This document shows, piece by piece, positions 10,500 to 64,000 of a stretch of 64,000 nt of DNA. A program made the translations under genes and the position numbers. This DNA is from Macrostomum lignano (Eukaryota): assembly GCA_002269645.1 (NCBI GenBank), contig NIVC01001993.1:62001-126000 (forward strand), in the 5' to 3' direction. The notes under the pieces are model-generated. The model was not told where the DNA came from. It ran no database searches and saw nothing but the letters and a program-made list of their open reading frames with translations. The number at the start of each line of letters is the position of its first letter. The stretch's first letter is position 1.

Positions 10500-12770
10500 T
10501 TAGATTACTGCACTCGATAAGCCAAGGATTATTGCTATTAATAAACCAAGGACTACTGCACTCGATAAACCAAGGACTATTGCTCTTGGCAAACCAAGGA
10601 TTACTGCACTCAAGAAGCCAAGGATTATTGCTATTAATAAACCAAGGATTACTGCACTTGGAAAACCAAGGATTACTGCACTCGATAAACCAAGGACTAT
10701 TGCTCTTGGCAAACCAAGGATTACTGCACTCAAGAAGCCAAGGATTATTGCACTTGGAAAACCAAGGATTACTGCACTCGATAAACCAAGGACTATTGCA
10801 CTTGATAAACCAAGGAATATTGCACTTGATAGGCCAAGGATTACTGCACTTGATAAACCAAGGATTATTGCACTTGATAGGCCAAAGATTACTGCGCTTG
10901 ATAAACCAAGGATTATTGCACTTGATAAACCAAGGATTACTGCACTCGATAAACCAAGGACTATTGCACTTGATAAACCAAGGAATATTGCACTTGATAG
11001 GCCAAGGATTACTGCACTTGATAAACCAAGGATTATTGCACTTGATAGGCCAAAGATTACTGCGCTTGATAAACCAAGGATTATTGCACTTGATAAACCA
11101 AGGATTATTGCACTTGATAAGCCAAGGATTACTGCGCTTGATAAACCAAGGATTATTGCACTTGATAAACAAAGGATTATTGCACTTGATAAACAAAGGA
11201 TTATTGCACTTGATAAACAAAGGATTATTGCACTTGATAAACCAAGGATTATTGCACTTGATAAGCCAAGGATTATTGCACTTGATAAGCCATGGATTAT
11301 TGCACTTGATAGTAAAGAATGTTGCACTTGATAAGCCAAGGATTAATGCACTGGATTATTCAAGGATTATTGATATTAATAAACCAAGGACTACTCCACT
11401 CGATAAACCAAGGATTATTGCTCTTAATAAACCAAGGATTACTGCACTTGGAAAACTAAGGATTACTGCACTCGATAAACCAAAGACTATTGCACTTGAT
11501 AAACCAAGGATTATTGCACTTGATAGGCCAAGGATTACTGCACTTGATAAACCAAGGATTATTGCACTTGATAGGCCAAAAATTACTGCGCTTGATAAAC
11601 CAAGGATTATTGCACTTGATAAACCAAGGATTATTGCACTTGATAAGCCAAGGATTATTGCACTTGATAAACCAATGATTATTGCAGTTGATAAGCCAAG
11701 GATTATTGCATCTGATAAACCAAAGATTATTGCACTTGATAAACCAAGGATTATTGCACTTGATAAACAAAGGATTATTGCACTTGATAGGCCAAAGATT
11801 ACTGCGCTTGATAAACCAAGGATTATTGCACTTGATAAACCAAGGATTATTGCTCTTGGCAAACCAAGGATTACTGCACTCGATAAGCCAAGGATTATTG
11901 CTCTTAATAAACCAAGGATTACTGCACTTGGAAAACTAAGGATTACTGCACTCGATAAACTAAGGATTATTGCTCTTGGCAAACCAAGGATTATTGCACT
12001 TGATAGGCCAAGGATTACTGCACTTGATAAACCAAGGATTATTGCACTTGATAAACCAAGGATTATTGCACTTGATAAGCCAAGGATTATTGCACTTGAT
12101 AGGCCAAGGATTACTGCGCTTGATAAACCAAGGATTATTGCACTTGATAAACCAAGGATTATTGCAGTTAATAAGCCAAGGATTATTGCACTTGATAAAC
12201 CAAGGATTATTACACTTGATAAACCAAGGATTATTGCACTTGATAAACCAAGGATTATTGCACTTGATAGGCCAAGGATTACTGCACTTGATAAACCAAG
12301 GATTATTGCACTTGATAGGCCAAAGATTACTGCGCTTGATAAACCAAGGATTATTGCAGTTGATAAGCCAAGGATTATTGCACTTGATAAACCAAGGATT
12401 ATTTCACTTGATAAACCAAGGATTATTGCACTTGATAAACAAATATTGCACTTGATAAACCAAGGATTATTGCACCTGATAAGCCAAGGATTACTGCGCT
12501 AGATAAACCAAGGATTATTGCACTTGATAAACCAAGCATTATTGCACTTAATAAACCAAGGATTATTGCACTTGATAAACCAAGGATTATTGCACTTGAT
12601 AAACAAAGGATTATTGCACTTGATAAACCAAGGATTATTGCACTTTATAAGCCAAAGATTACTGCACTTGATAAACCAAGGATTATTGCACTTGATAAAC
12701 CAAGGATTATTGCACTTGATTAATCAAGGATTATTGCTATTAATAAACCAAGGATTATTGCACTAGCTGA
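10500..12770. repeat. 24-bp minisatellite, about 95 copies
   Basis: Unit TTGCACTTGATAAACCAAGGATTA; it produces the 8-aa-periodic pseudo-ORFs LHLINQGL, IALDKPRI and LSSAIILG. Confidence 0.95.
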
Positions 12771-18985: not shown

Positions 18986-19470
18986 CCGATTATCGCCATC
19001 TAGTTCAAGTTGATTGAACATTCCCAGATGCTGGAGAGCCGCTTGTTGAGTCGGTGTAAATTTTTAATTCGTTTTTTTTGTTACAACGAGCTACTACTAG
19101 TAGTTAAAATGATTATAACTGTCTTTTAAGCAAACTTTTGTTGATTTTTATTCATTCAATTTTCTATCTATTTGCTAGCATTTTGTATTGCGATTGTTTT
19201 TTTATTTTTTTCTGTTTCTATTCAGTTCATTCGTATCACGCTTTATAAAAAAAACTGGTATTACTTTTAGTAGTATGAAGTATTGTAGAAGTGCGTATTT
19301 TTATAGTTTTAATTTAAAAAAATTACTGGTCCGATCATGTTTTCTATTACTCAACCTTTTTTCAAAAGCTTCTCTTTATGGGTCAACAAATTTTGATAAT
19401 GAAATTTTGCTGCATTGCATTATAAAAAATGTACTTGCGCCACTTGCTTCATTTTAAACTCTAAAATATT

Positions 19471-22400
19471 TTAAGAATGGCCCTGCAATCCTTTAAGAGT
19501 GGCCCTGCAATCCTTTAAGAATGGCCCTGCAATCCTTTAAGAATGGCCCTGCAATCCTTTAAGAATCGCCCTGCAATCCTTTAAGAATGGCTCTGCAATC
19601 CTTTAAGAATGGCTCTGCAATCCTTTAAGAGTGGCCCTGCAATCCTTTAAGAATGGCCCTGCAATCCTTTAAGAATGGCCCTGCAATCCTTTAAGAATGG
19701 CCCTGCGATCCTTTAAGAATGGCCCTGCAATCCTTTAAGAATGGCCCTGCAATCCTTTAAGAGTGGCCCTGAATCCTTTAAGAGTGGCCCTGCAATCCTT
19801 TAAGAGTGGCCCTGCAATCCTTTAAGAATGGCCCTGCAATCCTTTAAGAGTGGCCCTGCAATCCTTTAAGAGTGGCCCTGCAATCCTTTAAGAATGGCCC
19901 TGCAATCCTTTAAGAGTGGCCCTGCAGTCCTTTAAGAATGACCCTGCAATCCTTTAAGAATGGCCCTGCAATCCTTTAAGAATGGCCCTGCAATCCTTTA
20001 AGAGTGGCCCTGAATCCTTTAAGAGTGGCCCTGCGATCCTTTAAGAGTGGCCCTGCAATCCTTTAAGAATGGCCCTGCAATCCTTTAAGAGTGGCCCTGA
20101 ATCCTTTAAGAGTGGCCCTGCGATCCTTTAAGAATGACCCTGCAATCCTTTAAGAATGGCCCTGCAATCCTTTAAGAATGGCCCTGCAATCCTTTAAGAA
20201 TGGCCCTGCAATCCTTTAAGAATGGCCCTGCGATCCTTTAAGAGTGGCCCTGCAATCCTTTAAGAATCGCCCTGCAGTCCTTTAAGAATGGCCCTGCGAT
20301 CCTTTTAAGAATGGCCCTGCAATCCTTTAAGAATGGCCCTGCGATCCTTTAAGAGTGGCCCTGCAATCCTTTAAGAATGGCCCTGCAATCCTTTAAGAGT
20401 GGCCCCGCAATCCTTTAAGAATGGCCCTGCAATCCTTTAAGAATGGCCCTGCAATCCTTTAAGAATGGCCCCGCAATCCTTTAAGAGTGGCCCTGCAATC
20501 CTTTAAGAATGGCCCTGCAATCCTTTAAGAATGGCCCTGCAATCCTTTAAGAATGGCCCTGCAATCCTTTAAGAATGGCCCCGCAATCCTTTAAGAGTGG
20601 CCCTGCAATCCTTTAAGAATGGCCCTGCAATCCTTTAAGAATGGCCCTGCAATCCTTTAAGAATGGCCCTGCAATCCTTTAAGAATGGCCCTGCAATCCT
20701 TTAAGAATGGCCCTGCAATCCTTTAAGAAAGAATGGCCCTGCAATCCTTTAAGAATGGCCCTGCAATCCTTTAAGAATGGCCCTGCAATCCTTTAAGAAT
20801 GGCCCCGCAATCCTTTAAGAATGGCCCTGCAATCCTTTAAGAATGGCCCTGCAATCCTTTAAGAAAGAATGGCCCTGCAATCCTTTAAGAATGGCCCTGC
20901 AATCCTTTAAGAATCGCCCTGCAATCCTTTAAGAAAGAATGGCCCTACAATCCTTTAAGAATGGCCCTGCAATCCTTTAAGAAAGAATGGCCCTGCAATC
21001 CTTTAAGAATGGCCCTGCAATCCTTTAAGAATGGCCCTGCAATCCTTTGAGAATGGCCCTGCAATCCTTTAAGAATGGCCCTGCAATCCTTTAAGAATTG
21101 CCCTGCAATCCTTTAAGAATGGCCCTGCAATCCTTTAAGAATGGCCCTGCAATCCTTTAAGAATGGCCCTGCAATCCTTTAAGAATGGCCCTGCAATCCT
21201 TTAAGAGTGGCCCTGCAATCCTTTAAGAATGGCCCTGCAATCCTTTAAGAATGGCCCTGCAATCCTTTGAGAATGGCCCTGCAATCCTTTAAGAATGGCC
21301 CTGCAATCCTTTAAGAATGGCCCTGCAATCCTTTAAGAATGGCCCTGCAATCCTTTAAGAGTGGCCCTGCAATCCTTTAAGAATGGCCCTGCAATCCTTT
21401 AAGAAAGAATGGCCCTGCAATCCTTTAAGAATGGCCCTGCAATCCTTTAAGAATGGCCCTGCAATCCTTTAAGAATGGCCCTGCAATCCTTTAAGAATGG
21501 CCCTGCAATCCTTTAAGAATGGCCCTGCGATCCTTTAAGAATGGCCCCACAATCCTTTAAGAAAGAATGGCCCTGCAATCCTTTAAGAATGGCCCTGCAA
21601 TCCTTTAAGAAAGAATGGCCCTGCAATCCTTTAAGAATGGCCCTGCAATCCTTTAAGAATGGCCCTGCAATCCTTTAAGAATGGCCCTGCAATCCTTTAA
21701 GAAAGAATGGCCCTGCAATCCTTTAAGAATGGCCCTGCAATCCTTTAAGAATGGCCCTGCAATCCTTTAAGAATGGCCCTGCAATCCTTTAAGAGTGGCC
21801 CTGCAATCCTTTAAGAATGGCCCTGCAATCCTTTAAGAATGGCCCTGCAATCCTTTAAGAAAGAATGGCCCTGCAATCCTTTAAGAATGGCCCTGCAATC
21901 CTTTAAGAATGGCCCTGCAATCCTTTAAGAATGGCCCTGCAATCCTTTAAGAATGGCCCCGCAATCCTTTAAGAATGGCCCTGCGATCCTTTAAGAATGG
22001 CCCCGCAATCTTTTAAGAATGGCCCTGCAATCCTTTAAGAATGGCCCCGCAATCCTTTAAGAATGGCCCCGCAATCCTTTAAGAAAGAATGGCCCTGCAA
22101 TCCTTTAAGAATGGCCCCGCAATCCTTTAAGAAAGAATGGCCCTGCAATCCTTTAAGAATGGCCCTGCAATCCTTTAAGAATGGCCCTGCAATCCTTTAA
22201 GAATGGCCCTGCAATCCTTTAAGAAAGAATGGCCCTGCAATCCTTTAAGAATGGCCCCGCAATCTTTTAAGAATGGCCCTGCAATCCTTTAAGAATGGCC
22301 CCGCAATCCTTTAAGAATGGCCCCGCAATCCTTTAAGAAAGAATGGCCCTGCAATCCTTTAAGAATGGCCCCGCAATCCTTTAAGAAAGAATGGCCCTGC

Positions 22401-22491
22401 AATCCTTTAAGAATGGCCCTGCAATCCTTTAAGAATGGCCCTGCAATCCTTTAAGAATGGCCCTGCAATCCTTTAAGAAAGAATGGCCCTG
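19471..22491 (+). repeat. 22-bp satellite, left array, about 137 copies
   Basis: AAGAATGGCCCTGCAATCCTTT; +4-nt (AAAG) variants appear from about 20730 inward. Confidence 0.97.
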
Positions 22492-23446
22492 CTTGAAGAT
22501 TTTCTTTTTGCCTCGTCACCAGTCGCTCCTATTTAATCTCGCAAGTCCTTATTATTTGCCTTAATTTACGAGTATAATAAACAGTAGCGCATGTAAAAAG
22601 GCTTGCTCATATATTTTAGCCACTTTCATTCATACTCTGACTGCTTAGTTTCGTACGTTTGAATTTTTATACATACCAATTCATCCTATCGCTCAGCTCC
22701 CTGCATAGGCTCTGCCATCTAGTTTTTTGTCTTCTTAACATCCGACTGCTCCAATGGAAGAGTTTTACCGCCAAATTTATTCAGTTTGCAAAGCTGGCTA
22801 CGCGCCTCTGTTAATATTTGCCTTTTTGCCAAAATGAAACGCTATAAATGTTGACTTGATGCGTACATACTACTTAAAGCCCATAAAATCAATATCAGCG
22901 TCTGTTTGGAGTTTTTCGGATAAATTAAGGATTAGTTTAGTGAGCTGGCTGCTGCATAAGTGATTTTTGGTTTTATCGACCGGTGCCTCCGGTGCTTCCA
23001 GTGTCCGCGGCTTTTGTTTACCTGTAGCTGATTCTACAGATAAGCTAGTTTGGCGAATTCAATTTACTGTAGTGTTTCAAATACATCAGCATGCGCAACA
23101 AAATTTATATTGAAATCGCCTGTTGCCGATCAATGAATTGCTGTTCAATCTCACAAATCCGTCATTTTGATTGTCTAATTTTTACGATTGAAGAAAATAA
23201 TGATGAAAGAAACAGTTTATTTCTGGTGAAGCTATTGCTTCTTAAATTTTTAAAATACTATACATTCCTTTTATTATTTATATTTATAACATGCAAATTT
23301 TCAGTGCAAAACGAGAAGATTTCGATAGTCAAATGCAGATAATATTTACAGATGAAATACAAAATACGAAATGTTTTAACATACTGTATATGCATCTAGC
23401 AGTCAGTGATTATACAGTCATTGACAGAGAAAAGCGCACATGATGC

Positions 23447-25363
23447 TCAGTCGACCTCCTCAACGGTGGGTCCTCCAGCTCGCTGATGTCCAGGCTGAGG
23501 CTGACCAGACTGCTGCTGCTGCTGATGAAGCTTGGCCATGATTGGCGAGCAGCGGCTGCTGAGTTGCTGCTGCTGGTGGGCAATCTCGTCCTTCTCGGCA
23601 GTCTGGTTGTTCTCCAGCCAGGAAATCACTTGCTCGCAGGCGGCCACCACCTCGGCGGAGTCCTTCTCGCCCAGCTTGTCCTTGCAGTCGTTGGCAGCCT
23701 GCTTGTACTGGAAGGCGAGCGACTCGAGCTGGTTGCGGGCCGCCAGGCGCTCGCGGTGCCGCTCGTCCTCCTCGCGGAACTTCTCCGCATCCCGCACCAT
23801 CCTGTCGATCTCGTCCTTCGAGAGGCGGCCCTTGTCGTTCGTGATCGTGATCTTCTCCTCCTTGCTGGTGCTCTTGTCTTTCGCCGACACCACCAGGATT
23901 CCGTTGGCGTCAACGTCGAAGGTCACCTCGATCTGAGGGACTCCGCGCGGCGCTGGCGGGATCCCGTCCAGGTTGAACCGGCCCAGCAGGTGGTTGTCTC
24001 TGGTGAGCGCTCGCTCGCCCTCGAACACCTGCACCGTGACGCCGCTCTGGTTGTCCGAGTAGGTGGTGAACGTCTGCGTCGCCTTGGTCGGGATGCGGCT
24101 GTTCCGCTCGACAATCTTGGTCATCACCCCGCCGGCGGTCTCGATGCCGAGAGACAGCGGCGCCACATCCAGCAGCAGCAGGTCGTCGATCTTGTCGTCC
24201 TTCACGCCAGTCAGCACCGCAGCCTGCACGGCAGCTCCGTAGGCGACCGCCTCGTCCGGGTTGATCGACTTGTTCAGCGTCCGACCGCCCATGAATTCTT
24301 GCAGCAACTTCTGCACCCTCGGGATCCGGGTTGATCCGCCAACCAGCACGATCTCGTTGATGTTGCTCTTGTCCATCTTGGCGTCTCTCAGCGCTCGCTC
24401 CACCGGCTCCATCGTCTGGCGAAACAGGTCGGCGCACAGCTCCTCGAATCGAGCCCTGGTGACGCTCGTGTAAAAATCGATGCCCTCGAACAGCGAGTCA
24501 ATCTCGATGCTCGCCTGTGCCGAGCTGCTCAGCGTTCGCTTCGCTCGCTCAGCCGCAGTCCGAAGGCGTCTCACAGCCCGAGCGTTGCCGCTCATGTCCT
24601 TGCGGTACTTGCGCTTGAACTCTTGCATCAGGTGCTCAACCAGACGATGATCAAAGTCCTCGCCGCCGAGGTGGGTGTCGCCGGCGGTTGCGCGCACCTC
24701 GAACATGCTGCCCTCCGACACTGTCAGGATGGACACGTCGAACGTGCCGCCTCCCAGGTCAAAGATGAGAATGTTCTTCTCACCCTGCAGGTTCTTGTCC
24801 AGACCGTAGGCCAGTGCCGCAGCAGTCGGCTCGTTCACGATGCGCAGCACGTTCAGTCCGGCAATCGCCCCGGCATCCTTCGTTGCCTGTCGCTGACTGT
24901 CGTTGAAGTAGGCCGGCACTGTGATCACCGCGTCAGACACCTTCTCGCCGAGGTAGGCCTCCGCCGTCTCCTTCATCTTGGTGAGAACCATGGCGGAGAT
25001 CTCCTCCGGGTAGAAGCTGCGCCTCTCGCCCATGTACTGCACCTCAATCTTGGGTCGGCCTCCGTCGTTCGTCACCTTGAATGGCCACAGCTTCATGTCC
25101 CTCTGCACCGTCTCGTCTCCGAACTTTCGTCCGATCAGACGCTTCGCGTCAAACACTGTGTTGTCCGGATTCATCGCCACCTGGTTCTTTGCAGCGTCGC
25201 CTACCAGCCTCTCCGTGTCCGTGAAGGCCACGTAGCTGGGAGTGGTTCGGTTGCCCTGGTCATTGGCAATGATCTCCACTTTGCCTGCCTGGAACACGCC
25301 AACGCACGAGTACGTGGTGCCCAGGTCAATGCCGATTGCAGGACCGTTGTTGCTCTTACCCAT
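23447..25363 (-). CDS. hsp70: Heat shock protein 70, cytosolic, intronless, heat-inducible type, 638 aa
   Basis: [32 protein letters not shown] signatures; C-terminal GPTVEEVD; no introns. Confidence 0.99.
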
Positions 25364-25520
25364 GTTGTCGATCGATTAATTCGCACTTGCTTGATATACG
25401 AGTAGTAGCGTAGGCTGATGCGTCTGTTGCCTTGATGGCTTGCTTGGCTTTGCTGTTCGTTTCGTTCGCCTTGCGATCCGATTTCAATTCTTGCCTCCAA
25501 TTCTGGGCCGGGTGCTTCTC

Positions 25521-25616
25521 TTTTATAGACTCCGGCCCGTTTCTAGAAGTTTCCCGCACCATCCTCCGCGAATGCGCCGCGAGCTATTTTTAGCTCGTTC
25601 TGGAAATTTCTCGAAA
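25521..25616 (-). promoter_or_regulatory. hsp70 promoter of the left copy: two heat-shock elements and a TATA box
   Basis: Mirror image of 27069-27164. Confidence 0.9.
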
Positions 25617-26050
25617 AAAGAATTGCTTGACAAATTTTACCATTTGCGTCTATTTCGCCTACTTTAAGTAGAAAGTAACAAACGTGTAGTCTAATACAAA
25701 CATATTCTTACAAACATATTTACAATGTTAAAACCTAAAGGGATCAAGAAATTCTGTGGAAAATGGGATTAATGAATATTAGCGATAGTTTTGGTTGCGA
25801 AGAATTTATTTTGTTATTCAATATTTATTTGTTAAAACGATCAGGTCTTTCAGATTAACTGATTCTGGAAATCGGCGATATGTATAGAAATAGAACAAGC
25901 ATTGCAAGCACAAAACAAAAGTCAGAACAGTGCTATGTTTTAAAGTCGACTCAATCTTCTGAAGTGAAACAAAAGGAAAATACAAACAGCTTGTCAGTTG
26001 AATAATTTTTTAGTTAATGCTTATTAAGTGCACAAAACTAAATGGCAAAA

Positions 26051-26170
26051 AAGACAACAGCATTTGGTATTCCCAGGCGGTCACCCATCCAAGTACTAAC
26101 CAAACCCAACGTTGCTTAACTTCGGTGATCAGACGAGAACCGGTGTTTTCAACGTGGTATGGCCGTTGCC
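26051..26170 (-). rRNA. 5S rRNA: 5S rRNA, left copy
   Basis: Reverse complement of 26515-26634. Confidence 0.95.
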
Positions 26171-26514
26171 AATTACCGAGAGCACTCAACTTCAATTTAT
26201 ACTTCGCTACCGCCGCATTGTGTCAGCAGGCAATACGGTAACAAGTAATATGGCCCATTTTGTATCGACCAGGAGCCAATAGCCTCCTCGCCATAGCCTC
26301 CTGTCATTATCTGATTGTCGATTCAACGCAGAGAGAAATATCAATTAAAGATTGGTCAGTTGGTCAGGATTGGATATTCATCATCCCGATAAGGCGAGGA
26401 GGCTATTGGCTCCTGGTCGATACAAAATGGGCCATATTACTTGTTACCGTATTGCCTGCTGACACAATGCGGCGGTAGCGAAGTATAAATTGAAGTTGAG
26501 TGCTCTCGGTAATT

Positions 26515-26634
26515 GGCAACGGCCATACCACGTTGAAAACACCGGTTCTCGTCTGATCACCGAAGTTAAGCAACGTTGGGTTTGGTTAGTACTTGGATGG
26601 GTGACCGCCTGGGAATACCAAATGCTGTTGTCTT
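26515..26634 (+). rRNA. 5S rRNA: 5S rRNA, right copy
   Basis: GGCAACGGCCATACCACGTTGAAAACACCGGTTCTCGTCTGATCACCGAAGTTAAGC...TTAGTACTTGGATGGGTGACCGCCTGGGAATACCAAATGCTGTTGTCTT. Helix I (GGCAAC/GTTGTC), ACGTTG/CAACGT and TTTGGT/ACCAAA all pair. TATAAAT at about -30; T6 Pol III terminator at 26633-26638. Confidence 0.95.
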
Positions 26635-27068
26635 TTTTGCCATTTAGTTTTGTGCACTTAATAAGCATTAACTAAAAAATTATTCAACTGACAAGCTGTT
26701 TGTATTTTCCTTTTGTTTCACTTCAGAAGATTGAGTCGACTTTAAAACATAGCACTGTTCTGACTTTTGTTTTGTGCTTGCAATGCTTGTTCTATTTCTA
26801 TACATATCGCCGATTTCCAGAATCAGTTAATCTGAAAGACCTGATCGTTTTAACAAATAAATATTGAATAACAAAATAAATTCTTCGCAACCAAAACTAT
26901 CGCTAATATTCATTAATCCCATTTTCCACAGAATTTCTTGATCCCTTTAGGTTTTAACATTGTAAATATGTTTGTAAGAATATGTTTGTATTAGACTACA
27001 CGTTTGTTACTTTCTACTTAAAGTAGGCGAAATAGACGCAAATGGTAAAATTTGTCAAGCAATTCTTT

Positions 27069-27164
27069 TTTCGAGAAATTTCCAGAACGAGCTAAAAATA
27101 GCTCGCGGCGCATTCGCGGAGGATGGTGCGGGAAACTTCTAGAAACGGGCCGGAGTCTATAAAA
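27069..27164 (+). promoter_or_regulatory. hsp70 promoter of the right copy: HSE 27069-27088, HSE 27131-27145, TATAAAA 27158-27164
   Basis: tTTCgaGAAatTTCcaGAAc (4 nGAAn units) and gGAAacTTCtaGAAa (3 units) directly upstream of the TATA box. Confidence 0.9.
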
Positions 27165-27321
27165 GAGAAGCACCCGGCCCAGAATTGGAGGCAAGAATTG
27201 AAATCGGATCGCAAGGCGAACGAAACGAACAGCAAAGCCAAGCAAGCCATCAAGGCAACAGACGCATCAGCCTACGCTACTACTCGTATATCAAGCAAGT
27301 GCGAATTAATCGATCGACAAC

Positions 27322-29238
27322 ATGGGTAAGAGCAACAACGGTCCTGCAATCGGCATTGACCTGGGCACCACGTACTCGTGCGTTGGCGTGTTCCAGGCAG
27401 GCAAAGTGGAGATCATTGCCAATGACCAGGGCAACCGAACCACTCCCAGCTACGTGGCCTTCACGGACACGGAGAGGCTGGTAGGCGACGCTGCAAAGAA
27501 CCAGGTGGCGATGAATCCGGACAACACAGTGTTTGACGCGAAGCGTCTGATCGGACGAAAGTTCGGAGACGAGACGGTGCAGAGGGACATGAAGCTGTGG
27601 CCATTCAAGGTGACGAACGACGGAGGCCGACCCAAGATTGAGGTGCAGTACATGGGCGAGAGGCGCAGCTTCTACCCGGAGGAGATCTCCGCCATGGTTC
27701 TCACCAAGATGAAGGAGACGGCGGAGGCCTACCTCGGCGAGAAGGTGTCTGACGCGGTGATCACAGTGCCGGCCTACTTCAACGACAGTCAGCGACAGGC
27801 AACGAAGGATGCCGGGGCGATTGCCGGACTGAACGTGCTGCGCATCGTGAACGAGCCGACTGCTGCGGCACTGGCCTACGGTCTGGACAAGAACCTGCAG
27901 GGTGAGAAGAACATTCTCATCTTTGACCTGGGAGGCGGCACGTTCGACGTGTCCATCCTGACAGTGTCGGAGGGCAGCATGTTCGAGGTGCGCGCAACCG
28001 CCGGCGACACCCACCTCGGCGGCGAGGACTTTGATCATCGTCTGGTTGAGCACCTGATGCAAGAGTTCAAGCGCAAGTACCGCAAGGACATGAGCGGCAA
28101 CGCTCGGGCTGTGAGACGCCTTCGGACTGCGGCTGAGCGAGCGAAGCGAACGCTGAGCAGCTCGGCACAGGCGAGCATCGAGATTGACTCGCTGTTCGAG
28201 GGCATCGATTTTTACACGAGCGTCACCAGGGCTCGATTCGAGGAGCTGTGCGCCGACCTGTTTCGCCAGACGATGGAGCCGGTGGAGCGAGCGCTGAGAG
28301 ACGCCAAGATGGACAAGAGCAACATCAACGAGATCGTGCTGGTTGGCGGATCAACCCGGATCCCGAGGGTGCAGAAGTTGCTGCAAGAATTCATGGGCGG
28401 TCGGACGCTGAACAAGTCGATCAACCCGGACGAGGCGGTCGCCTACGGAGCTGCCGTGCAGGCTGCGGTGCTGACTGGCGTGAAGGACGACAAGATCGAC
28501 GACCTGCTGCTGCTGGATGTGGCGCCGCTGTCTCTCGGCATCGAGACCGCCGGCGGGGTGATGACCAAGATTGTCGAGCGGAACAGCCGCATCCCGACCA
28601 AGGCGACGCAGACGTTCACCACCTACTCGGACAACCAGAGCGGCGTCACGGTGCAGGTGTTCGAGGGCGAGCGAGCGCTCACCAGAGACAACCACCTGCT
28701 GGGCCGGTTCAACCTGGACGGGATCCCGCCAGCGCCGCGCGGAGTCCCTCAGATCGAGGTGACCTTCGACGTTGACGCCAACGGAATCCTGGTGGTGTCG
28801 GCGAAAGACAAGAGCACCAGCAAGGAGGAGAAGATCACGATCACGAACGACAAGGGCCGCCTCTCGAAGGACGAGATCGACAGGATGGTGCGGGATGCGG
28901 AGAAGTTCCGCGAGGAGGACGAGCGGCACCGCGAGCGCCTGGCGGCCCGCAACCAGCTCGAGTCGCTCGCCTTCCAGTACAAGCAGGCTGCCAACGACTG
29001 CAAGGACAAGCTGGGCGAGAAGGACTCCGCCGAGGTGGTGGCCGCCTGCGAGCAAGTGATTTCCTGGCTGGAGAACAACCAGACTGCCGAGAAGGACGAG
29101 ATTGCCCACCAGCAGCAGCAACTCAGCAGCCGCTGCTCGCCAATCATGGCCAAGCTTCATCAGCAGCAGCAGCAGTCTGGTCAGCCTCAGCCTGGACATC
29201 AGCGAGCTGGAGGACCCACCGTTGAGGAGGTCGACTGA
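27322..29238 (+). CDS. hsp70: Heat shock protein 70, cytosolic, intronless, heat-inducible type, 638 aa (protein identical to the left copy)
   Basis: Same signatures and EEVD terminus. Confidence 0.99.
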
Positions 29239-30203
29239 GCATCATGTGCGCTTTTCTCTGTCAATGACTGTATAATCACTGACTGCTAGATGCATATACA
29301 GTATGTTAAAACATTTCGTATTTTGTATTTCATCTGTAAATATTATCTGCATTTGACTATCGAAATCTTCTCGTTTTGCACTGAAAATTTGCATGTTATA
29401 AATATAAATAATAAAAGGAATGTATAGTATTTTAAAAATTTAAGAAGCAATAGCTTCACCAGAAATAAACTGTTTCTTTCATCATTATTTTCTTCAATCG
29501 TAAAAATTAGACAATCAAAATGACGGATTTGTGAGATTGAACAGCAATTCATTGATCGGCAACAGGCGATTTCAATATAAATTTTGTTGCGCATGCTGAT
29601 GTATTTGAAACACTACAGTAAATTGAATTCGCCAAACTAGCTTATCTGTAGAATCAGCTACAGGTAAACAAAAGCCGCGGACACTGGAAGCACCGGAGGC
29701 ACCGGTCGATAAAACCAAAAATCACTTATGCAGCAGCCAGCTCACTAAACTAATCCTTAATTTATCCGAAAAACTCCAAACAGACGCTGATATTGATTTT
29801 ATGGGCTTTAAGTAGTATGTACGCATCAAGTCAACATTTATAGCGTTTCATTTTGGCAAAAAGGCAAATATTAACAGAGGCGCGTAGCCAGCTTTGCAAA
29901 CTGAATAAATTTGGCGGTAAAACTCTTCCATTGGAGCAGTCGGATGTTAAGAAGACAAAAAACTAGATGGCAGAGCCTATGCAGGGAGCTGAGCGATAGG
30001 ATGAATTGGTATGTATAAAAATTCAAACCTACGAAACTAAGCAGTCAGAGTATGAATGAAAGTGGCTAAAATATATGAGCAAGCCTTTTTACATGCGCTA
30101 CTGTTTATTATACTCGTAAATTAAGGCAAATAATAAGGACTTGCAAGATTAAATAGGAGCGACTGGTGACGAGGCAAAGAGAAAATCTTCAAGGAGATCC
30201 TCA

Positions 30204-33200
30204 AGGATTGCAGGGCCATTCTTAAAGGATTGCAGGGCCATTCTTAAAGGATTGCAGGGCCATTCTTAAAGGATTGCAGGGCCATTCTTAAAGGATTGCA
30301 GGGCCATTCTTAAAGGATTGCAGGGCCACTCTTAAAGGATTGCAGGGCCATTCTTAAAGGATTGCAAGGCTATTCTTAAATGATTGCAGGGCCATTCTTA
30401 AAGGATTGCAGGGCCATTCTTAAAGGACTGCAGTGCCATTCTTAAAGGATTGCAAGGCTATTCTTAAAGGATTGCAGGGCCATTCTTAAAGGATTGCAGG
30501 GCCATTCTTAAAGGACTGCAGGGCCATTCTTAAAGGATTGCAAGGCTATTCTTAAAGGATTGCAGGGCCATTCTTAAAGGATTGCAGGGCGATTCTTAAA
30601 GGACTGCAGGGCCATTCTTAAAGGATTGCAAGGCCATTCTTAAAGGATTGCAGGGCAATTCTTAAAGGATTGCAGGGCCACTCTTAAAGGATTGCAGGGC
30701 GATTCTTAAAGGATTGCAGGGCCATTCTTAAAAGGATTGCAGGGCCACTCTTAAAGGATTGCAGGGCCATTCTTAAAGGATTGCAGGGCCATTCTTAAAG
30801 GATTGCAGGGCAATTCTTAAAGGATTGCAGGGCCACTCTTAAAGGATTGCAGGGCGATTCTTAAAGGATTGCAGGGTCATTCTTAAAGGATTGCAGGGCC
30901 ATTCTTAAAGGATTGCAGACCATTCTTAAAAGGATTGCAGGGCCACTCTTAAAGGATTGCAGGGCCATTCTTAAAGGATTGCAGGGCCACTCTTAAAGGA
31001 TTGCAGGGCCATTCTTAAAGGATTGTAGGGCCATTCTTAAAGGATTGCAGGGCCATTCTTAAAGGATTGCAGACCATTCTTAAAGGATTGCAGGGCCATT
31101 CTTAAAGGATTGCAGGGCTATTCTTAAAGGATTGCAGGGCCATTCTTAAAGGATTGCAGGGCCACTCTTAAAGGATTGCAGGGCCATTCTTAAAAGGATT
31201 GCAGGGCCATTCTTAAAGGATTGCAGGGCGATTCTTAAAGGATTGCAGGGCCATTCTTAAAGGATTGCAGGGCCATTCTTAAAGGATTGCAGGGCGATTC
31301 TTAAAGGATTGCAGGGCCATTCTTAAAGGATTGCAGGGCCACTTTTAAAGGATTGCAGGGCGATTCTTAAAGGATTGCAGGGCCATTCTTAAAGGATTGT
31401 AGGGCCATTCTTAAAGGATTGCAGGGTCATTCTTAAAGGATTGCAGACCATTCTTAAAGGATTGCAGGGCCACTCTTAAAGGATTGCAGGGCCATTCTTA
31501 AAGGATTGCAGGGCGATTCTTAAAGGATTGCAGGGCCATTCTTAAAGGATTGCAGGGCCATTCTAAAAGGATTGCAGGGCGATTCTTAAAGGATTGCAGG
31601 GCCATTCTTAAAGGATTGCAGGGCCATTCTTAAAGGATTGCAGGGCCACTCTTAAAGGATTGCAGGGCCATTCTTAAAAGATTGCAGGGCCATTCTTAAA
31701 GGATTGCAGGGCCACTCTTAAAGGATTGCAGGGTGATTCTTAAAGGATTGCAGGGCCATTCTTAAAAGGATTGCAGGGCCACTCTTAAAGGATTGCAGGG
31801 CCATTCTTAAAGGATTGCAGGGCCATTCTTAAAGGATTGCAGGGCAATTCTTAAAGGATTGCAGGGCCACTCTTAAAGGATTGCAGGGCGATTCTTAAAG
31901 GATTGCAGGGTCATTCTTAAAGGATTGCAGGGCCATTCTTAAAGGATTGCAGACCATTCTTAAAAGGATTGCAGGGCCACTCTTAAAGGATTGCAGGGCC
32001 ATTCTTAAAGGATTGCAGGGCCACTCTTAAAGGATTGCAGGGCCATTCTTAAAGGATTGTAGGGCCATTCTTAAAGGATTGCAGGGCCATTCTTAAAGGA
32101 TTGCAGACCATTCTTAAAGGATTGCAGGGCCATTCTTAAAGGATTGCAGGGCTATTCTTAAAGGATTGCAGGGCCATTCTTAAAGGATTGCAGGGCCACT
32201 CTTAAAGGATTGCAGGGCCATTCTTAAAAGGATTGCAGGGCCATTCTTAAAGGATTGCAGGGCGATTCTTAAAGGATTGCAGGGCCATTCTTAAAGGATT
32301 GCAGGGCCATTCTTAAAGGATTGCAGGGCCATTCTTAAAGGATTGCAGGGCCATTCTTAAATGATTGCAGGGCGATTCTTAAAGGATTGCAGGGCCATTC
32401 TTAAAGGATTGCAGGGCCACTTTTAAAGGATTGCAGGGCGATTCTTAAAGGATTGCAGGGCCATTCTTAAAGGATTGTAGGGCCATTCTTAAAGGATTGC
32501 AGGGTCATTCTTAAAGGATTGCAGACCATTCTTAAAGGATTGCAGGGCCACTCTTAAAGGATTGCAGGGCCATTCTTAAAGGATTGCAGGGCGATTCTTA
32601 AAGGATTGCAGGGCCATTCTTAAAGGATTGCAGGGCCATTCTAAAAGGATTGCAGGGCGATTCTTAAAGGATTGCAGGGCCATTCTTAAAGGATTGCAGG
32701 GCCATTCTTAAAGGATTGCAGGGCCACTCTTAAAGGATTGCAGGGCCATTCTTAAAAGATTGCAGGGCCATTCTTAAAGGATTGCAGGGCCACTCTTAAA
32801 GGATTGCAGGGCCATTCTTAAAGGATTGCAGGGCGATTCTTAAAGGATTGCAGGGCCATTCTTAAAAGGATTGCAGGGCCACTCTTAAAGGATTGCAGGG
32901 CCATTCTTAAAGGATTGCAGGGCCACTCTTAAAGGATTGCAGGGCCATTCTTAAAGGATTGCAGGGCCACTCTTAAAGGATTGCAGGGCCATTTTTAAAG
33001 GATTGCAGGGCGATTCTTAAAGGATTGCAGGGCCATTCTTAAAGGATTGCAGACCATTCTTAAAGGATTGCAGGGCCACTCTTAAAGGATTGCAGGGCCA
33101 TTCTTAAAGGATTGCAGGGCCACTTTTAAAGGATTGCAGGGCGATTCTTAAAGGATTGCAGGGCCATTCTTAAAGGATTGCAGGGCCACTTTTAAAGGAT

Positions 33201-34128
33201 TGCAGGGCGATTCTTAAAGGATTGCAGGGCCATTCTTAAAGGATTGCAGGGTCATTCTTAAAGGATTGCAGACCATTCTTAAAGGATTGCAGGGCCATTC
33301 TTAAGGGATTGCAGGGCCATTCTTAAAGGATTGCAGACCATTCTTAAAGGATTGCAGGGCCACTCTTAAAGGATTGCAGGGCCATTCTTAAAGGATTGCA
33401 GGGCCACTTTTAAAGGATTGCAGGGCGATTCTTAAAGGATTGCAGGGCCATTCTTAAAGGATTGCAGGGCCACTTTTAAAGGATTGCAGGGCGATTCTTA
33501 AAGGATTGCAGGGCCATTCTTAAAGGATTGTAGGGCCATTCTTAAAGGATTGCAGGGTCATTCTTAAAGGATTGCAGACCATTCTTAAAGGATTGCAGGG
33601 CCATTCTTAAAGGATTGCAGGGCCATTCTTAAAGGATTGAAGGGCGATTCTTAAAGGATTGCAGGGCCATTCTTAAAGGATTGCAGGGCGATTCTTAAAG
33701 GATTGCAGGGCCATTCTTAAAGGATTGCAGGGCCATTCTTAAAGGATTGCAGGGCCACTCTTAAAGGATTGCAGGGCCATTCTTAAAGGATTGCAGGGCC
33801 ACTTTTAAAGGATTGCAGGGCGATTCTTAAAGGATTGCAGGGCCATTCTTAAAGGATTGCAGACCATTCTTAAAGGATTGCAGACCATTCTTAAAGGATT
33901 GCAGGGCCATTCTTAAAGGATTGCAGGGCCATTCTTAAAAGGATTGCAGGGCCATTCTTAAAGGATTGCAGGGCCAATTGCAGGACCAAGACCAAGACCA
34001 AGCCCACTCTTAAAAGGATTGCAGGGCCACTCTTAAAGGATTGCAGAGCCATTCTTTCTTAAAGGATTGCAGGGCGATTCTTAAAGGATTGCAGGGCCAT
34101 TCTTAAAGGATTGTAGGGCCACTCTTAA
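30204..34128 (-). repeat. 22-bp satellite, right array in inverted orientation, about 178 copies
   Basis: AAAGGATTGCAGGGCCATTCTT is the reverse complement of the left unit; private variants include GCAGACC (2-nt deletion), GTAGGG and GGCGATT. Confidence 0.97.
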
Positions 34129-34799
34129 GGATAGCTGGGCGGTTCTTAGAGGAGCCGTAGGGCCAAGAAACTCGAACTGTTTAATATTAGATTGCATCCA
34201 GTATTTGAGTAGCTAAAAGTACGATAAAAAGCGGTGTAACGAATCAATACGATTGTAGTGATAGAACTCCTTGGTCTGAAACTATTACAATGGGCATTAA
34301 CGCAAGCTGGGGGTGAATTAGAATCAAATAGTTGATCAGCAGGGGAAGGGGGCCGTTGCCCAGCGAAAATCAATAGCCTGAACAGCCGTGAGAACTGGCG
34401 CACACAAGTGCCTCGACTCCGCATGCAGCAACTTCTCAGCTAGCATAGTCTAGCCATTCCCCTCAACTGTGCCGGCTGGGTTCTGCTCAAAAAAGCATTG
34501 AGTTGGTTGGGACGGTTGGCCGGGAGCTCAAAAAGAGTCGGGAAACGTTTAAACAATTCTCGTTAGAGTCGATTGTACAACAGGGCTAATCTTGGCGCGA
34601 GTTAGGGAGACACGCTATACTCAAGCTACTGAGCACGGGGACGCGAATTGGGGATTGGGCGCTGACTCAGAACAAAAAGTCGGCTCTGAACTGCAAGTTT
34701 GCAAGGACTGAATTAGTTCCCGCAATACTATTGAGCTGAACTCGCTCAGGGCCAAAGTCTGTCCTGTCACCTCAACCGAAAACAAGCAAGCGGCTGCAG

Positions 34800-37653
<2,854 letters not shown>

Positions 37654-42794: not shown

Positions 42795-44125
42795 GGAGAC
42801 GTACAGGGAGATGCACAGGGAGATGCACAGGGGGATGCACAGGGAGATTCACACAGAGATGCACAGGGAGATTCACACAGAGATGCACAGGGAGATTCAC
42901 ACAGAGATGCACAGGGAGATTCACACAGAGATGCACAGGGAGATGCACAGGGAGATGCACAGGGAGATGCACAGGGAGATGCACAGGGAGATGCACAGGG
43001 AGATGCACAGGGAGATGCACAGGGAGATGCACAGGGAGATGCACAGGGAGATGCACAGGGAGATGCACAGGGAGATTCACAGGGAGATGCACAGGGAGAC
43101 GCACAGGGAGATGCACAGGGAGACGCACAGGGAGATGCACAGGGAGATGCACAGGGAGATGCACAGGGAGATGCACAGGGAGACGCACAGGGAGATGCAC
43201 AGGGAGATGCACAGGGAGATGCACAGGGAGACGCACAGGGAGATGCACAGGGAGATGCACAGGGAGACGCACAGGGAGATGCACAGGGAGATGCACAGGG
43301 AGACGCACAGGGAGATGCACAGGGAGACGCACAGAGAGATGCACAGGGAGATGCACAGGGAGACGCACAGGGAGATGCACAGGGAGACGCACAGGGAGAT
43401 GCACAGGGAGATGCACAGGGAGATGCACAGGGAGACGCACAGGGAGATGCACAGGGAGACGCACAGGGAGATGCACAGGGAGATGCACAGGGAGACGCAC
43501 AGGGAGATGCACAGGGAGACGCACAGGGAGATGCACAGGGAGATGCACAGGGAGATGCACAGGGAGACGCACAGGGAGATGCACAGGGAGACGCACAGGG
43601 AGATGCACAGGGAGACGCACAGGGAGATGCACAGGGAGATGCACAGGGAGACGCACAGGGAGATGCACAGGGAGACGCACAGGGAGATGCACAGGGAGAT
43701 GCACAGGGAGATGCACAGGGAGACGCACAGGGAGATGCACAGGGAGATGCACAGGGAGATGCACAGGGAGACGCACAGGAAGATGCACAGGGAGATGCAC
43801 AGGGAGATGCATAGGGAGATGCACAGGGAGATCCACAGGGAGATTCACACAGAGATGCACAGGGAGATGCACAGGGAGATGCACAGGGAGATGCACAGGG
43901 AGATGCACAGGGAGATGCACAGGGAGATGCACAGGGAGATTCACACAGAGATGCACAGGGAGATGCACAGGGAGATGCACAGGGAGATGCACAGGGAGAT
44001 GCACAGGGAGATGCACAGGGAGATGCACAGGGAGATGCACAGGGAGATGCACAGGGGGATGCACAGGGAGACGCACAGGGAGATGCACAGGGGGATGCAC
44101 AGGGAGACGCACAGGGAGATGGAGA
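42795..44125. repeat. 12-bp minisatellite, about 110 copies
   Basis: CACAGGGAGATG / CACAGGGAGACG. Confidence 0.97.
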
Positions 44126-44914: not shown

Positions 44915-59382
<14,468 letters not shown>

Positions 59383-63044: not shown

Positions 63045-64000
63045 TTCTAGGGTGAGATTCGGATATGGAAGCTATTCTAGGGTGAGATTCGGATATGGAA
63101 GCGATTCTAGGGTGAGATTCAGAAATGGAAGCGATTCTAGGGTGAGATTCGGATATGGAAGCTATTCTAGGGTGAGATTCGGATATGGAAGCGATTCTAG
63201 GGTGAGATTCGGATATGGAAGCGATTCTAGGGTGAGACTCCGTTATGGAAGCGATTCTAGGGTGAGATTTGGATATGGAAACTCCAAATCTATCCAAATA
63301 GGGTGAGAATTGGATATGGAAGCGATTCTAGGGTGAGAATCGGATATGGAAGCGATTCTAGGGTGAGAATCGAATATGGAAGCGATTCTAGGGTGAGATT
63401 AGGATATGGAAGCGATTCTAGGGTGAGATTCGGATATGGAAGCTATTCTAGGGTGAGATTCGGATATGGAAGCTATTCTAGGGTGAGATTCGGATATGGA
63501 AGCTATTCTAGGGTGAGACTCCGTTATGGAAGCGATTCTAGGGTGAGATTTGGATATGGAAGCGATTCTAGGGTGAGAATTGGATATGGAAGCGATTCTA
63601 GGGTGAGATTTGGATATGGAAGCTATTCTAGGGTGAGATTCGGATATGGAAGCTATTCTAGGGTGAGATTCGGATATGGAAGCGATTCTAGGGTGAGATT
63701 CGGATATGGAAGCGATTCTAGGGTGAGACTCCGTTATGGAAGCGATTCTAGGGTGAGATTTGGATATGGAAACTCCAAATCTATCCAAATAGGGTGAGAA
63801 TTGGATATGGAAGCGATTCTAGGGTGAGAATCGGATATGGAAGCGATTCTAGGGTGAGAATCGGATATGGAAGCGATTCTAGGGTGAGATTAGGATATGG
63901 AAGCGATTCTAGGGTGAGATTCGGATATGGAAGCTATTCTAGGGTGAGATTCGGATATGGAAGCGATTCTAGGGTGAGATTCGGATATGGAAGCGATTCT
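63045..64000. repeat. 30-bp minisatellite with a 491-bp higher-order repeat, running off the window
   Basis: GATTCTAGGGTGAGATTCGGATATGGAAGC; the interruption ACTCCAAATCTATCCAAATA recurs at 63281 and 63772. Confidence 0.95.

Follow-up and report, generated by a model that had tools for sequence, protein, structure and literature searches.

Intact 5S rRNA genes lie next to a head-to-head pair of hsp70 genes within a palindrome in Macrostomum lignano

We found that the region between two divergent hsp70 genes of the flatworm Macrostomum lignano contains a pair of 5S rRNA genes that, judged by their sequence, are bona fide and structurally intact. The pair lies in a 64-kb window, the whole stretch of DNA that we analyzed, and all coordinates below refer to it. 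The best explanation, which we consider reasonably probable, is that an intact orphon-type 5S gene was joined once to hsp70, that the pairing was doubled by a palindrome, and that the 5S genes are probably transcribed and are next to hsp70 incidentally.

Results

The right 5S gene (26515-26633, + strand) and the left 5S gene (26052-26170, - strand) are exact reverse complements. Each matched Rfam family RF00001 with 116.5 bits (E=5e-25; gathering score, 38) across the entire model (1-120 of 120), and the alignment flagged no non-canonical pairs in either copy. This score is higher than those of 5S genes from foreign arrays (106.6-111.8 bits with RF00001). The two genes were the sole Rfam matches above gathering in the 64-kb window, and a search of 22400-30300 at E<=1 gave no other convincing match. 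The MFE fold of the 5S sequence was the canonical three-way junction (-40.5 kcal/mol, z=-2.1). ACGTTG/CAACGT and TTTGGT/ACCAAA, which are reverse complements within the gene and which the first-pass annotation had proposed to be helices, were both paired in this fold. The transcription signals that it had described were also borne out. A T6 run is located at 26633-26638 (+; mirror 26047-26052, -), a TATAAA is located at -31 relative to the right 5S start (26484-26489, +; mirror 26196-26201, -), and the positions of the internal control region agree with the Rfam consensus. Pol III terminates at runs of at least four T's, and in several invertebrates and fungi, 5S genes require TATA-like elements near -30. 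Separately, a recently derived silent 5S copy would look identical in sequence to a transcribed copy.

The main 5S family of M. lignano has been analyzed previously. The outward-facing primers 5SF and 5SR yielded a 1645-bp fragment containing coding sequence and NTS, and FISH detected a single cluster, which was terminal on MLI2p; the authors noted that a few 5S copies elsewhere could not be excluded (PMC5704211; PMC7013459). The comparison with this family that the first-pass annotation had called for gave an exact match to both primers (5SF at 26540 and 5SR at 26517), that is, over the 40 of 119 nt that could be compared. The 64-kb window contains just two 5S copies, and these are head-to-head. 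Because the main family is a separate array, represented by the 1645-bp PCR fragment and located on chromosome MLI2, we conclude that the genes in the window are dispersed (orphon-type) copies outside of the main MLI2 array.

The right hsp70 gene (27322-29238, +) is an intronless open reading frame of 638 amino acids that ends in EEVD and matches Pfam PF00012 with 850.9 bits. The left gene (23447-25363, -) is the mirror of this open reading frame. Four UniProt models of M. lignano showed no amino acid differences from it in any of the blocks that aligned, and amino acids 1-75 of an M. lignano model (P0017) matched the translation of the hsp70 promoter and 5'UTR in the window with 100% identity. 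These matches identify the window as M. lignano. A pattern scan identified a distal heat-shock element (HSE), TTCgaGAAatTTCcaGAA, at 27070-27087 (+; mirror 25598-25615) and a proximal one, GAAacTTCtaGAA, at 27132-27144 (+; mirror 25541-25553), with a TATAAA downstream of the latter at 27158 (+). In 22000-31000, the scan found the HSEs of hsp70 only; neither the region upstream of the 5S genes nor that between them contained one.

The interval from 25363 to 27322 is the entire intergenic region separating the two hsp70 start codons. From the center outward, the order on each side is 5S, 427 nt of AT-rich DNA, a compact heat-shock promoter with two HSEs and a TATA box, and then the inducible hsp70. 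The AT-rich spacer extends from the 5S terminator to the distal HSE (26639-27065, +; mirror 25620-26046) and is 30% GC. It is present once per arm and nowhere else in the 64-kb window, and had no Rfam match. Directly before the distal HSE, at about 27066, GC content rises abruptly from 30% to 49%. Each 5S gene and its hsp70 share a strand (+ for the right pair, - for the left), as had been noted initially, and T6 is separated from the distal HSE by 432 nt, a distance that had been put at about 430 bp.

These two units are the arms of a 7.7-kb palindrome. The left arm (22489-26295, -) and the right arm (26390-30196, +) are inverted repeats of 3807 nt, comprising hsp70, its promoter, the AT-rich spacer, the 5S gene, and 125 nt of sequence upstream of 5S. 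Between them is a unique central spacer of 94 nt (26296-26389) that is not self-complementary and is 40% GC; its only Rfam match was noise (sR46, 20.8 bits compared to a gathering score of 50). The arms differ at five positions (22491, 22506, 22540, 22656, and 26293). Four of the five are within the outermost 170 nt, and 22657-26292 (3636 nt) is perfect. The identity includes about 960 nt of hsp70 3' flank and all of the upstream DNA. Because both 5S-hsp70 units belong to a single palindrome, as arms with 5 mismatches in 3807 nt, they are not independent, and the linkage is a single duplicated event. The replication implied by the initial description, in which each 5S gene accompanied its own hsp70, is one observation seen twice in palindromic copies.

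The outer end of each arm abuts an array of a 22-bp satellite, TTTAAGAATGGCCCTGCAATCC, detected with TRF. There are about 134 copies on the left (19470-22479) and about 172 copies on the right (30203-33976). The two arrays are in inverted orientation and are 91-96% identical, and minisatellite arrays make up about 41% of the 64-kb window. We found no satellite between the hsp70 start codons (25363-27322); it begins about 960 nt past each hsp70 stop codon, on the side of the gene opposite 5S. It had been suggested that the 5S genes insulate the hsp70 promoter from the satellite. This role fails because the satellite is on the far side of hsp70 from 5S: the 5S pair is at the center of the palindrome, between the promoters, and the satellite is 3' of each hsp70.

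Discussion

We propose that one DNA-level event placed a 5S unit, consisting of the gene and 125 nt or more of its upstream flank, at the upstream edge of the hsp70 regulatory region, and that formation of the palindrome then doubled the joint unit. Near-identity of the arms would have been kept by recency or by arm-to-arm gene conversion. Given the intact signals, Pol III probably transcribes the 5S copies by the usual type 1 pathway (TFIIIA, TFIIIC, TFIIIB), and these copies would make a minor contribution to the 5S pool. Insertion of 5S at an hsp70 promoter is plausible because heat-shock promoters attract DNA insertion; one report describes them as preferred targets because their chromatin is constitutively accessible (PMC1592238). 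At 5S itself, we found no target-site duplication, terminal repeats, or transposon hallmark. The P elements in Drosophila heat-shock promoters that the same report covers are similar in that non-native DNA adjoins the HSE block on its upstream side, here at the GC step at about 27066. In contrast to P elements, the neighbor in M. lignano is a cellular 5S gene lacking transposon hallmarks, and we infer the insertion.

A literature search found no report of 5S-hsp70 linkage, in agreement with the first-pass annotation, to which hsp70 was unfamiliar as a 5S partner. The partners named in a review are limited to 45S rDNA, histone genes, and the spliced leader, and it also mentions that 5S genes are occasionally dispersed (PMC10946416). 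The 5S genes linked to 45S rDNA, histone, spliced-leader RNA, or U snRNA genes are also a few hundred bases from an unrelated gene on the same strand, and in known linkages, as at the M. lignano locus, 5S keeps its own Pol III signals (PMC10946416). The known linkages are in tandemly repeated units that are often common to related taxa, whereas the M. lignano case is a single palindromic locus in which 5S is paired with a Pol II stress gene that is no tandem family, and the species has its main 5S array elsewhere. The copies in the window resemble 5S orphons in being complete, in having promoter elements of their own, and in lying apart from the array. Unlike singly scattered orphons, they are embedded at the core of a palindrome that carries genes. 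As a linkage, the adjacency of 5S and hsp70 is unreported, and it is most likely incidental.

In Diptera (Drosophila 87A7 Hsp70Aa/Ab and pairs in mosquitoes), inducible hsp70 genes are head-to-head, intronless, divergent, and near-identical. The M. lignano pair has this same layout, with HSEs near the TATA box. In contrast to the dipteran pairs, identity in the flatworm continues through the entire upstream DNA and about 960 nt of the 3' flank, and there are two Pol III genes in the middle of the shared control region. The organization of dipteran hsp70 clusters is treated in PMC3071340.

Could the palindrome or the 5S genes have arisen in some other way? A fold-back chimera of a long read would make a palindrome out of a single real 5S-hsp70 unit, and 3636 nt of perfect arm identity is what such a read should give. 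We find this scarcely credible. The central 94 nt are unique and non-palindromic, the mismatches are concentrated at the outer ends of the arms, and the flanking satellite arrays are unlike in length (3.0 compared to 3.8 kb) as well as in sequence. In addition, a gene model predicted in an independent assembly of M. lignano (UniProt A0A1I8I9J3; P0125) runs from antisense left-arm hsp70 through 27102-27326 into right-arm hsp70. One fused model covers both arms, so the independent assembly carries the same head-to-head pair. Even if the palindrome were an artifact, one 5S-hsp70 unit would be left. It is also highly improbable that 5S arrived as cargo of a mobile element, as a 5S-derived SINE, a TRIM of the Cassandra/Ajax type, or a fragment captured in a DNA transposon. 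SINEs derived from 5S and TRIMs with 5S promoters are known, one of them in nemerteans (PMC10946416), and the attraction of insertions to heat-shock promoters, noted above (PMC1592238), would fit. However, each 5S gene is full length (model 1-120) and is followed directly by T6, with no SINE body or tail; the copies are inverted, whereas LTRs would be direct; and the 64-kb window has no further copy of the 5S flanks. Terminal repeats and a target-site duplication, as stated above, were not found.

Two other possibilities concern function. The 5S genes could be recent strays from the main array, intact through youth or homogenization of the arms, and either untranscribed or repressed by their repeat-rich surroundings. 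The abundance of tandem repeats around the locus is consistent with this, the main array is present to supply 5S rRNA, and the near-identity of the arms means that selection on the 5S sequence is not measurable. Nonetheless, we regard silence as rather unlikely: the genes have zero structural defects and outscore array genes of other organisms, retain TATAAA at -31 and T6, and adjoin promoters expected to be in accessible chromatin. Alternatively, Pol III machinery (TFIIIA, TFIIIC, TFIIIB) on the 5S pair might organize hsp70 chromatin and be maintained by selection. Retention of every 5S signal and the short distance from 5S to the HSE (432 nt) are in favor of such coupling. We consider it quite unlikely. 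Heat-shock promoters in other animals keep their own chromatin open, the satellite is 3' of each hsp70 and not between 5S and the promoter, and a single evolutionary event is visible. Furthermore, the predicted N-terminal extensions of three paralogue models (P0008, P0018, and P0121; 92-95% amino acid identity) do not resemble the upstream region in the window, and translation of 5S of the window type was found in 0 database proteins. There are precedents: Pol III genes and TFIIIC sites act as barriers and insulators in yeasts and mammals (PMC12409998; PMC3395662), and human HSP70 is reported in a preprint to bind 5S rRNA and tRNA, to be present at Pol III loci, and to facilitate transcription by Pol III (bioRxiv 10.1101/2023.04.10.536203). 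The tDNA and TFIIIC barriers likewise place a Pol III unit near Pol II promoters in repeat-rich DNA. In contrast to the A/B-box insulators of tDNAs, the 5S promoter is type 1 and is bound first by TFIIIA; the 5S pair is between two promoters and not between promoter and satellite.

Incidental adjacency to hsp70, and not selected regulatory coupling, is the default and most likely reading. If coupling were true, the shared 2-kb control region could be kept depleted of nucleosomes, the divergent promoters could be separated, or 5S output could be tied to Hsp70 expression.

Intact 5S rRNA genes in an hsp70 upstream region

We found two full-length 5S rRNA genes between a divergent pair of hsp70 genes. 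The left copy is at 26052-26170 on the minus strand and the right copy is at 26515-26633 on the plus strand. Across the 64-kb window, each matched the Rfam 5S rRNA model RF00001 over all of its 120 positions (1-120) with 116.5 bits (E=5e-25; gathering score, 38), and no non-canonical pairs were flagged in the cmscan alignment of either copy. For comparison, the scores of 5S genes from true arrays in unrelated organisms (contigs L002-L005) were 106.6-111.8 bits against the same model. A permissive Rfam rescan of 22400-30300 gave, beyond the 5S genes, one noise match only, and tRNA genes (ARAGORN), telomeric repeats and other Rfam families were all not found near the locus.

The MFE and centroid folds of the 5S RNA were both the canonical three-way junction (-40.5 kcal/mol), with a z-score of only -2.1, so that folding energy by itself is weak evidence. 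The helices ACGTTG/CAACGT and TTTGGT/ACCAAA, singled out in the first-pass annotation of this DNA, are indeed reverse-complementary, and the MFE fold pairs them.

The signals for Pol III that the annotation had listed (internal promoter boxes, an upstream TATA-like box and a terminator) were also present. A T6 terminator at 26633-26638 (plus strand) begins at the last base of the right 5S gene, and the left arm has the mirror copy. TATAAA is found at 26484 (plus strand), position -31. The internal promoter boxes (A, intermediate element, C) were placed by the Xenopus literature, and the presumed box C is the same as that of Xenopus at 17 of 18 positions. All of the strongly conserved Rfam consensus positions in these three stretches were matched in the cmscan alignment (consensus stretches GAAGUUAAGC... 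and AGUACU.GG.UGGGUGACC.CCUGGGAA). At the level of sequence, the case that both 5S genes are intact is strong. Because the type 1 promoter and terminator signals are all intact, we infer that both copies are probably transcribed by Pol III.

Each strand of the 5S gene has one open reading frame running through it (26490-26675, plus, 61 aa; 26444-26668, minus, 74 aa). When the translations of these two 5S-spanning ORFs were used to query a metagenome protein collection, the matches were 409 foreign 5S translations, none of them identical to the query. That is, hundreds of 'proteins' in that collection are actually translated 5S genes. The best matches, L002 (NCBI GCA_035092445.1, contig JAYKCM010015583.1) and L003-L005 (ENA metagenome scaffolds), are compact 5S and tRNA clusters from unrelated organisms. 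They contain two to three 5S genes spaced ~186 nt apart and ringed by many tRNA genes, with more than 20 tRNAs in 5 kb in L003.

The right hsp70 (27322-29238, plus) is an intronless ORF of 638 aa that ends in EEVD, and the left hsp70 (23447-25363, minus) encodes the same 638-aa protein, which matches Pfam PF00012 with 850.9 bits. Upstream of the right copy, a pattern scan found a four-unit heat-shock element (HSE) at 27070-27087 and a three-unit HSE at 27132-27144, both on the plus strand, and TATAAA is at 27158 (plus). These are the features of a divergent inducible hsp70 pair: head-to-head intact intronless ORFs, nGAAn-type HSEs and TATA boxes. The scan, which covered 22000-31000, found the hsp70 HSEs only; none was upstream of or between the 5S genes. 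The 5S gene sits 689-807 nt upstream of the hsp70 ATG. The distal HSE lies 432 nt beyond the 5S terminator, in agreement with the ~430 bp initially estimated. GC content changes from 30% at 26639-27065 to 49% at 27066-27321, with the step falling exactly at the distal HSE, and the recognisable control DNA left to hsp70 is ~260 nt. The proposal that 5S genes lie within the hsp70 upstream region was borne out by the full-length RF00001 matches, the canonical fold and the intact signals.

One linkage duplicated in a palindrome

Each 5S-hsp70 unit makes up one arm of a palindrome, at 22489-26295 and 26390-30196 (3807 nt each, separated by a 94-nt spacer). A base-by-base comparison of the arms revealed five mismatches (22491, 22506, 22540, 22656 and 26293), and 22657-26292 is mirrored perfectly. 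The first-pass annotation had described each 5S gene as accompanying its own hsp70. The linkage is real, but the two instances are not independent: because the units are palindrome arms, they represent one linkage, duplicated.

It was possible that the palindrome was an artefact of a read folded back on itself. We rejected this explanation on several grounds. The spacer is a unique sequence without self-complementarity, the outermost 170 nt account for four of the five mismatches between the arms, and the satellite flanks have diverged in both length and sequence. In addition, UniProt A0A1I8I9J3 (P0125), a gene model from an independent M. lignano assembly, covers both arms. Residues 17-470 of this model (named 'Secreted protein' in UniProt) correspond to the left-arm hsp70 (23534-24940) translated in antisense from the plus strand, with blocks identical except for a frame-switch region and two to three residues. 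The exon that follows, 27102-27326, is 100% identical to promoter and 5'UTR and leads into the right-arm Hsp70. The 'intron' of the model spans the interval where both 5S genes lie in the window; the model bears on the hsp70 arms and not on the 5S genes.

Both arms end at satellite arrays of a 22-bp unit, TTTAAGAATGGCCCTGCAATCC, at 19470-22479 (~134 copies) and 30203-33976 (~172 copies; right end also placed at 34165). The two arrays are in inverted orientation, 91-96% identical and unequal in length and copy number. The inverted duplication may therefore once have taken in part of the satellite; alternatively, it may have arisen inside the satellite.

Tandem repeats are common in the window. 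About 41% of 1-64000 (30 arrays, 26 kb) is minisatellite or tandem repeat, with many unrelated unit types of 8-63 bp and one of 151 bp; examples are at 10503-12764 (24 bp x 94), 42795-44121, 56020-57018 (AGTTAGTT) and 63045-64000. There is no telomeric TTAGGG run in the window, and recognisable ORFs are few. Two plus-strand ORFs just outside the right satellite, 34800-36323 and 37003-37638, have weak Ig matches below the Pfam cut-offs (V-set, 18.3 bits; Ig_3, 23.4 bits). They could belong to an Ig-superfamily gene as exons, or the matches could be due to chance. The ORF at 34800-36323 also holds a 22-bp tandem array.

Other copies of hsp70 and 5S

The Hsp70 proteins nearest to that of the window are from M. 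lignano itself. In block-wise alignment, four M. lignano UniProt models (P0017, P0124, P0125 and P0126) had no Hsp70 amino-acid differences from the window protein. Identities of 92-97% to M. lignano models could be read as paralogy or as a sister species; we rejected this reading because the blocks do not differ and the gaps are artefacts of predicted introns. The four near-identical models suggest that there are several copies or haplotigs of the hsp70 gene in that assembly.

The public M. lignano models at 23534-24940 and 27102-29235 (A0A1I8I9J3, A0A1I8I8J9, A0A1I8HH09 and A0A1I8IHW4) are artefacts. Residues 1-75 of P0017 are translated non-coding promoter and 5'UTR, and other artefactual models begin inside the promoter and drop residues 61-158 as a false intron. 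Public models here run antisense hsp70, promoter DNA and hsp70 together.

The true paralogues P0122 and P0123 are 88% and 87% identical in DNA to the window hsp70. On the 5' side of the start codon their Logan contigs have only 47 and 100 nt, not enough to include a 5S gene. Their 5'UTRs did not align to the window, and the N-terminal extensions of the paralogue models P0008, P0018 and P0121 had no similarity to the upstream DNA of the window.

Outside M. lignano, the one macrostomid-like contig found (L001; JGI metagenome 3300040801, contig Ga0450804_2748667) encodes an Hsp70 85% identical in amino acids to that of the window, with its own HSE and TATA box, and presumably comes from another flatworm of that kind. 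Its 422 nt upstream of the ATG contain no 5S gene, a stretch shorter than the 689-807 nt at which the 5S gene lies in the window. This Hsp70 and many others are annotated by their source as 'L1 cell adhesion molecule like protein', a misnomer. Neither the window Hsp70 nor M. lignano P0008 had a record in an exact search of the contig index. A query with the N-terminal 157 aa of Hsp70 for upstream-reaching contigs gave nothing above 85% identity among the matches listed, and metagenome scans with halves of the window 5S gene (3' 56 nt; 5' 58 nt) gave 0 matches.

Zadesenets and co-workers used outward primers, 5SF and 5SR, on M. lignano 5S rDNA and obtained a 1645-bp fragment of coding sequence and NTS (PMC5704211; PMC7013459). 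By FISH there is one 5S cluster, at the end of MLI2p; a few copies elsewhere could have gone undetected (PMC5704211; PMC7013459). The two primers match the window 5S gene exactly, so the comparison with the main family that the first-pass annotation had called for is an exact match over the 40 of 119 nt covered. The organisation is not the head-to-tail repetition of the main array: the 64 kb hold only two copies, which face each other head-to-head, 344 nt apart. As they do not form a tandem array, they are dispersed copies.

Origin and possible function of the linkage

The linkage had been unfamiliar at first reading, and we found no report of it in a full-text literature search. The partners of 5S genes listed in a 2024 review are 45S rDNA, histone genes and the spliced leader, and the review also gives occasional dispersal (PMC10946416). 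On the literature searched, the arrangement is therefore a variant of 5S linkage or dispersal that has not been reported. Known linked units of 5S and multigene families are tandemly reiterated and are often shared by related species. This locus is a single palindrome, with no further 5S or hsp70 copies found beyond it in the 64-kb window. We also considered 5S-derived SINE and TRIM elements (SINE3, Cassandra, Ajax). These have a 5S head with an unrelated body or tail, or 5S in direct LTRs, and occur as many dispersed copies. In contrast, the 5S genes here are full-length and end in T6, and the copies are inverted. Neither the 5S flanks nor the hsp70 3' flank has a second copy elsewhere in the 64-kb window, and a search for transposon hallmarks there found none.

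The 5S-hsp70 association reflects one event in a single species, later duplicated; it is real but a modest curiosity. Most likely, one DNA-level rearrangement or insertion placed a 5S unit at the upstream end of the control region used in heat shock. Heat-shock promoters are documented insertion hot spots, because their chromatin is constitutively accessible (PMC1592238). The joined unit would next have been doubled into the palindrome, and the likeness of the arms may have been kept by recency or by arm-to-arm conversion.

Alternatively, the 5S pair may be maintained by selection within the hsp70 control region. Stably bound TFIIIA/TFIIIC/TFIIIB at the palindrome centre would form a Pol III-dependent boundary or nucleosome-excluding anchor that keeps both heat-shock promoters poised inside satellite-rich chromatin, or local 5S transcription would be coupled to Hsp70. 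The arrangement would then recur at hsp70 loci in other Macrostomum species. TFIIIC-bound Pol III genes can act as barriers (PMC12409998, PMC3395662), and in human cells HSP70 is reported to bind 5S rRNA and Pol III (bioRxiv 10.1101/2023.04.10.536203). At this locus, a role as organiser of a shared control region, or a link to the binding of 5S rRNA and Pol III by Hsp70, rests on proximity. We consider selection for such a role very unlikely, and there is a small chance that the 5S pair at the palindrome centre is a genuine Pol III/heat-shock regulatory module. A more specific suggestion, that the 5S genes keep hsp70 insulated from the satellite, is contradicted by the map. The satellite lies ~960 nt beyond each hsp70 stop codon, the arrays abut the hsp70 3' flanks (22479 and 30203), and the 5S genes are on the opposite side of the gene, between the promoters, at the palindrome centre. 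A barrier against the satellite was rejected on this layout. Transgenesis is established in M. lignano, so an effect of the 5S genes on hsp70 chromatin is directly testable.

The hsp70 promoter is short and well defined, with both HSEs and the TATA box inside the ~260 nt before the ATG, and may be of use for inducible expression, whether the 5S module is included or left out. Should the 5S genes act on the chromatin of hsp70, the locus would be the first case in which a type 1 Pol III gene forms part of the control region of a heat-shock gene. An incidental linkage would be a neat example of how dispersed 5S genes arise beside constitutively accessible promoters, and of how a palindrome can disguise one event as a repeated association, a caution for genome scans.
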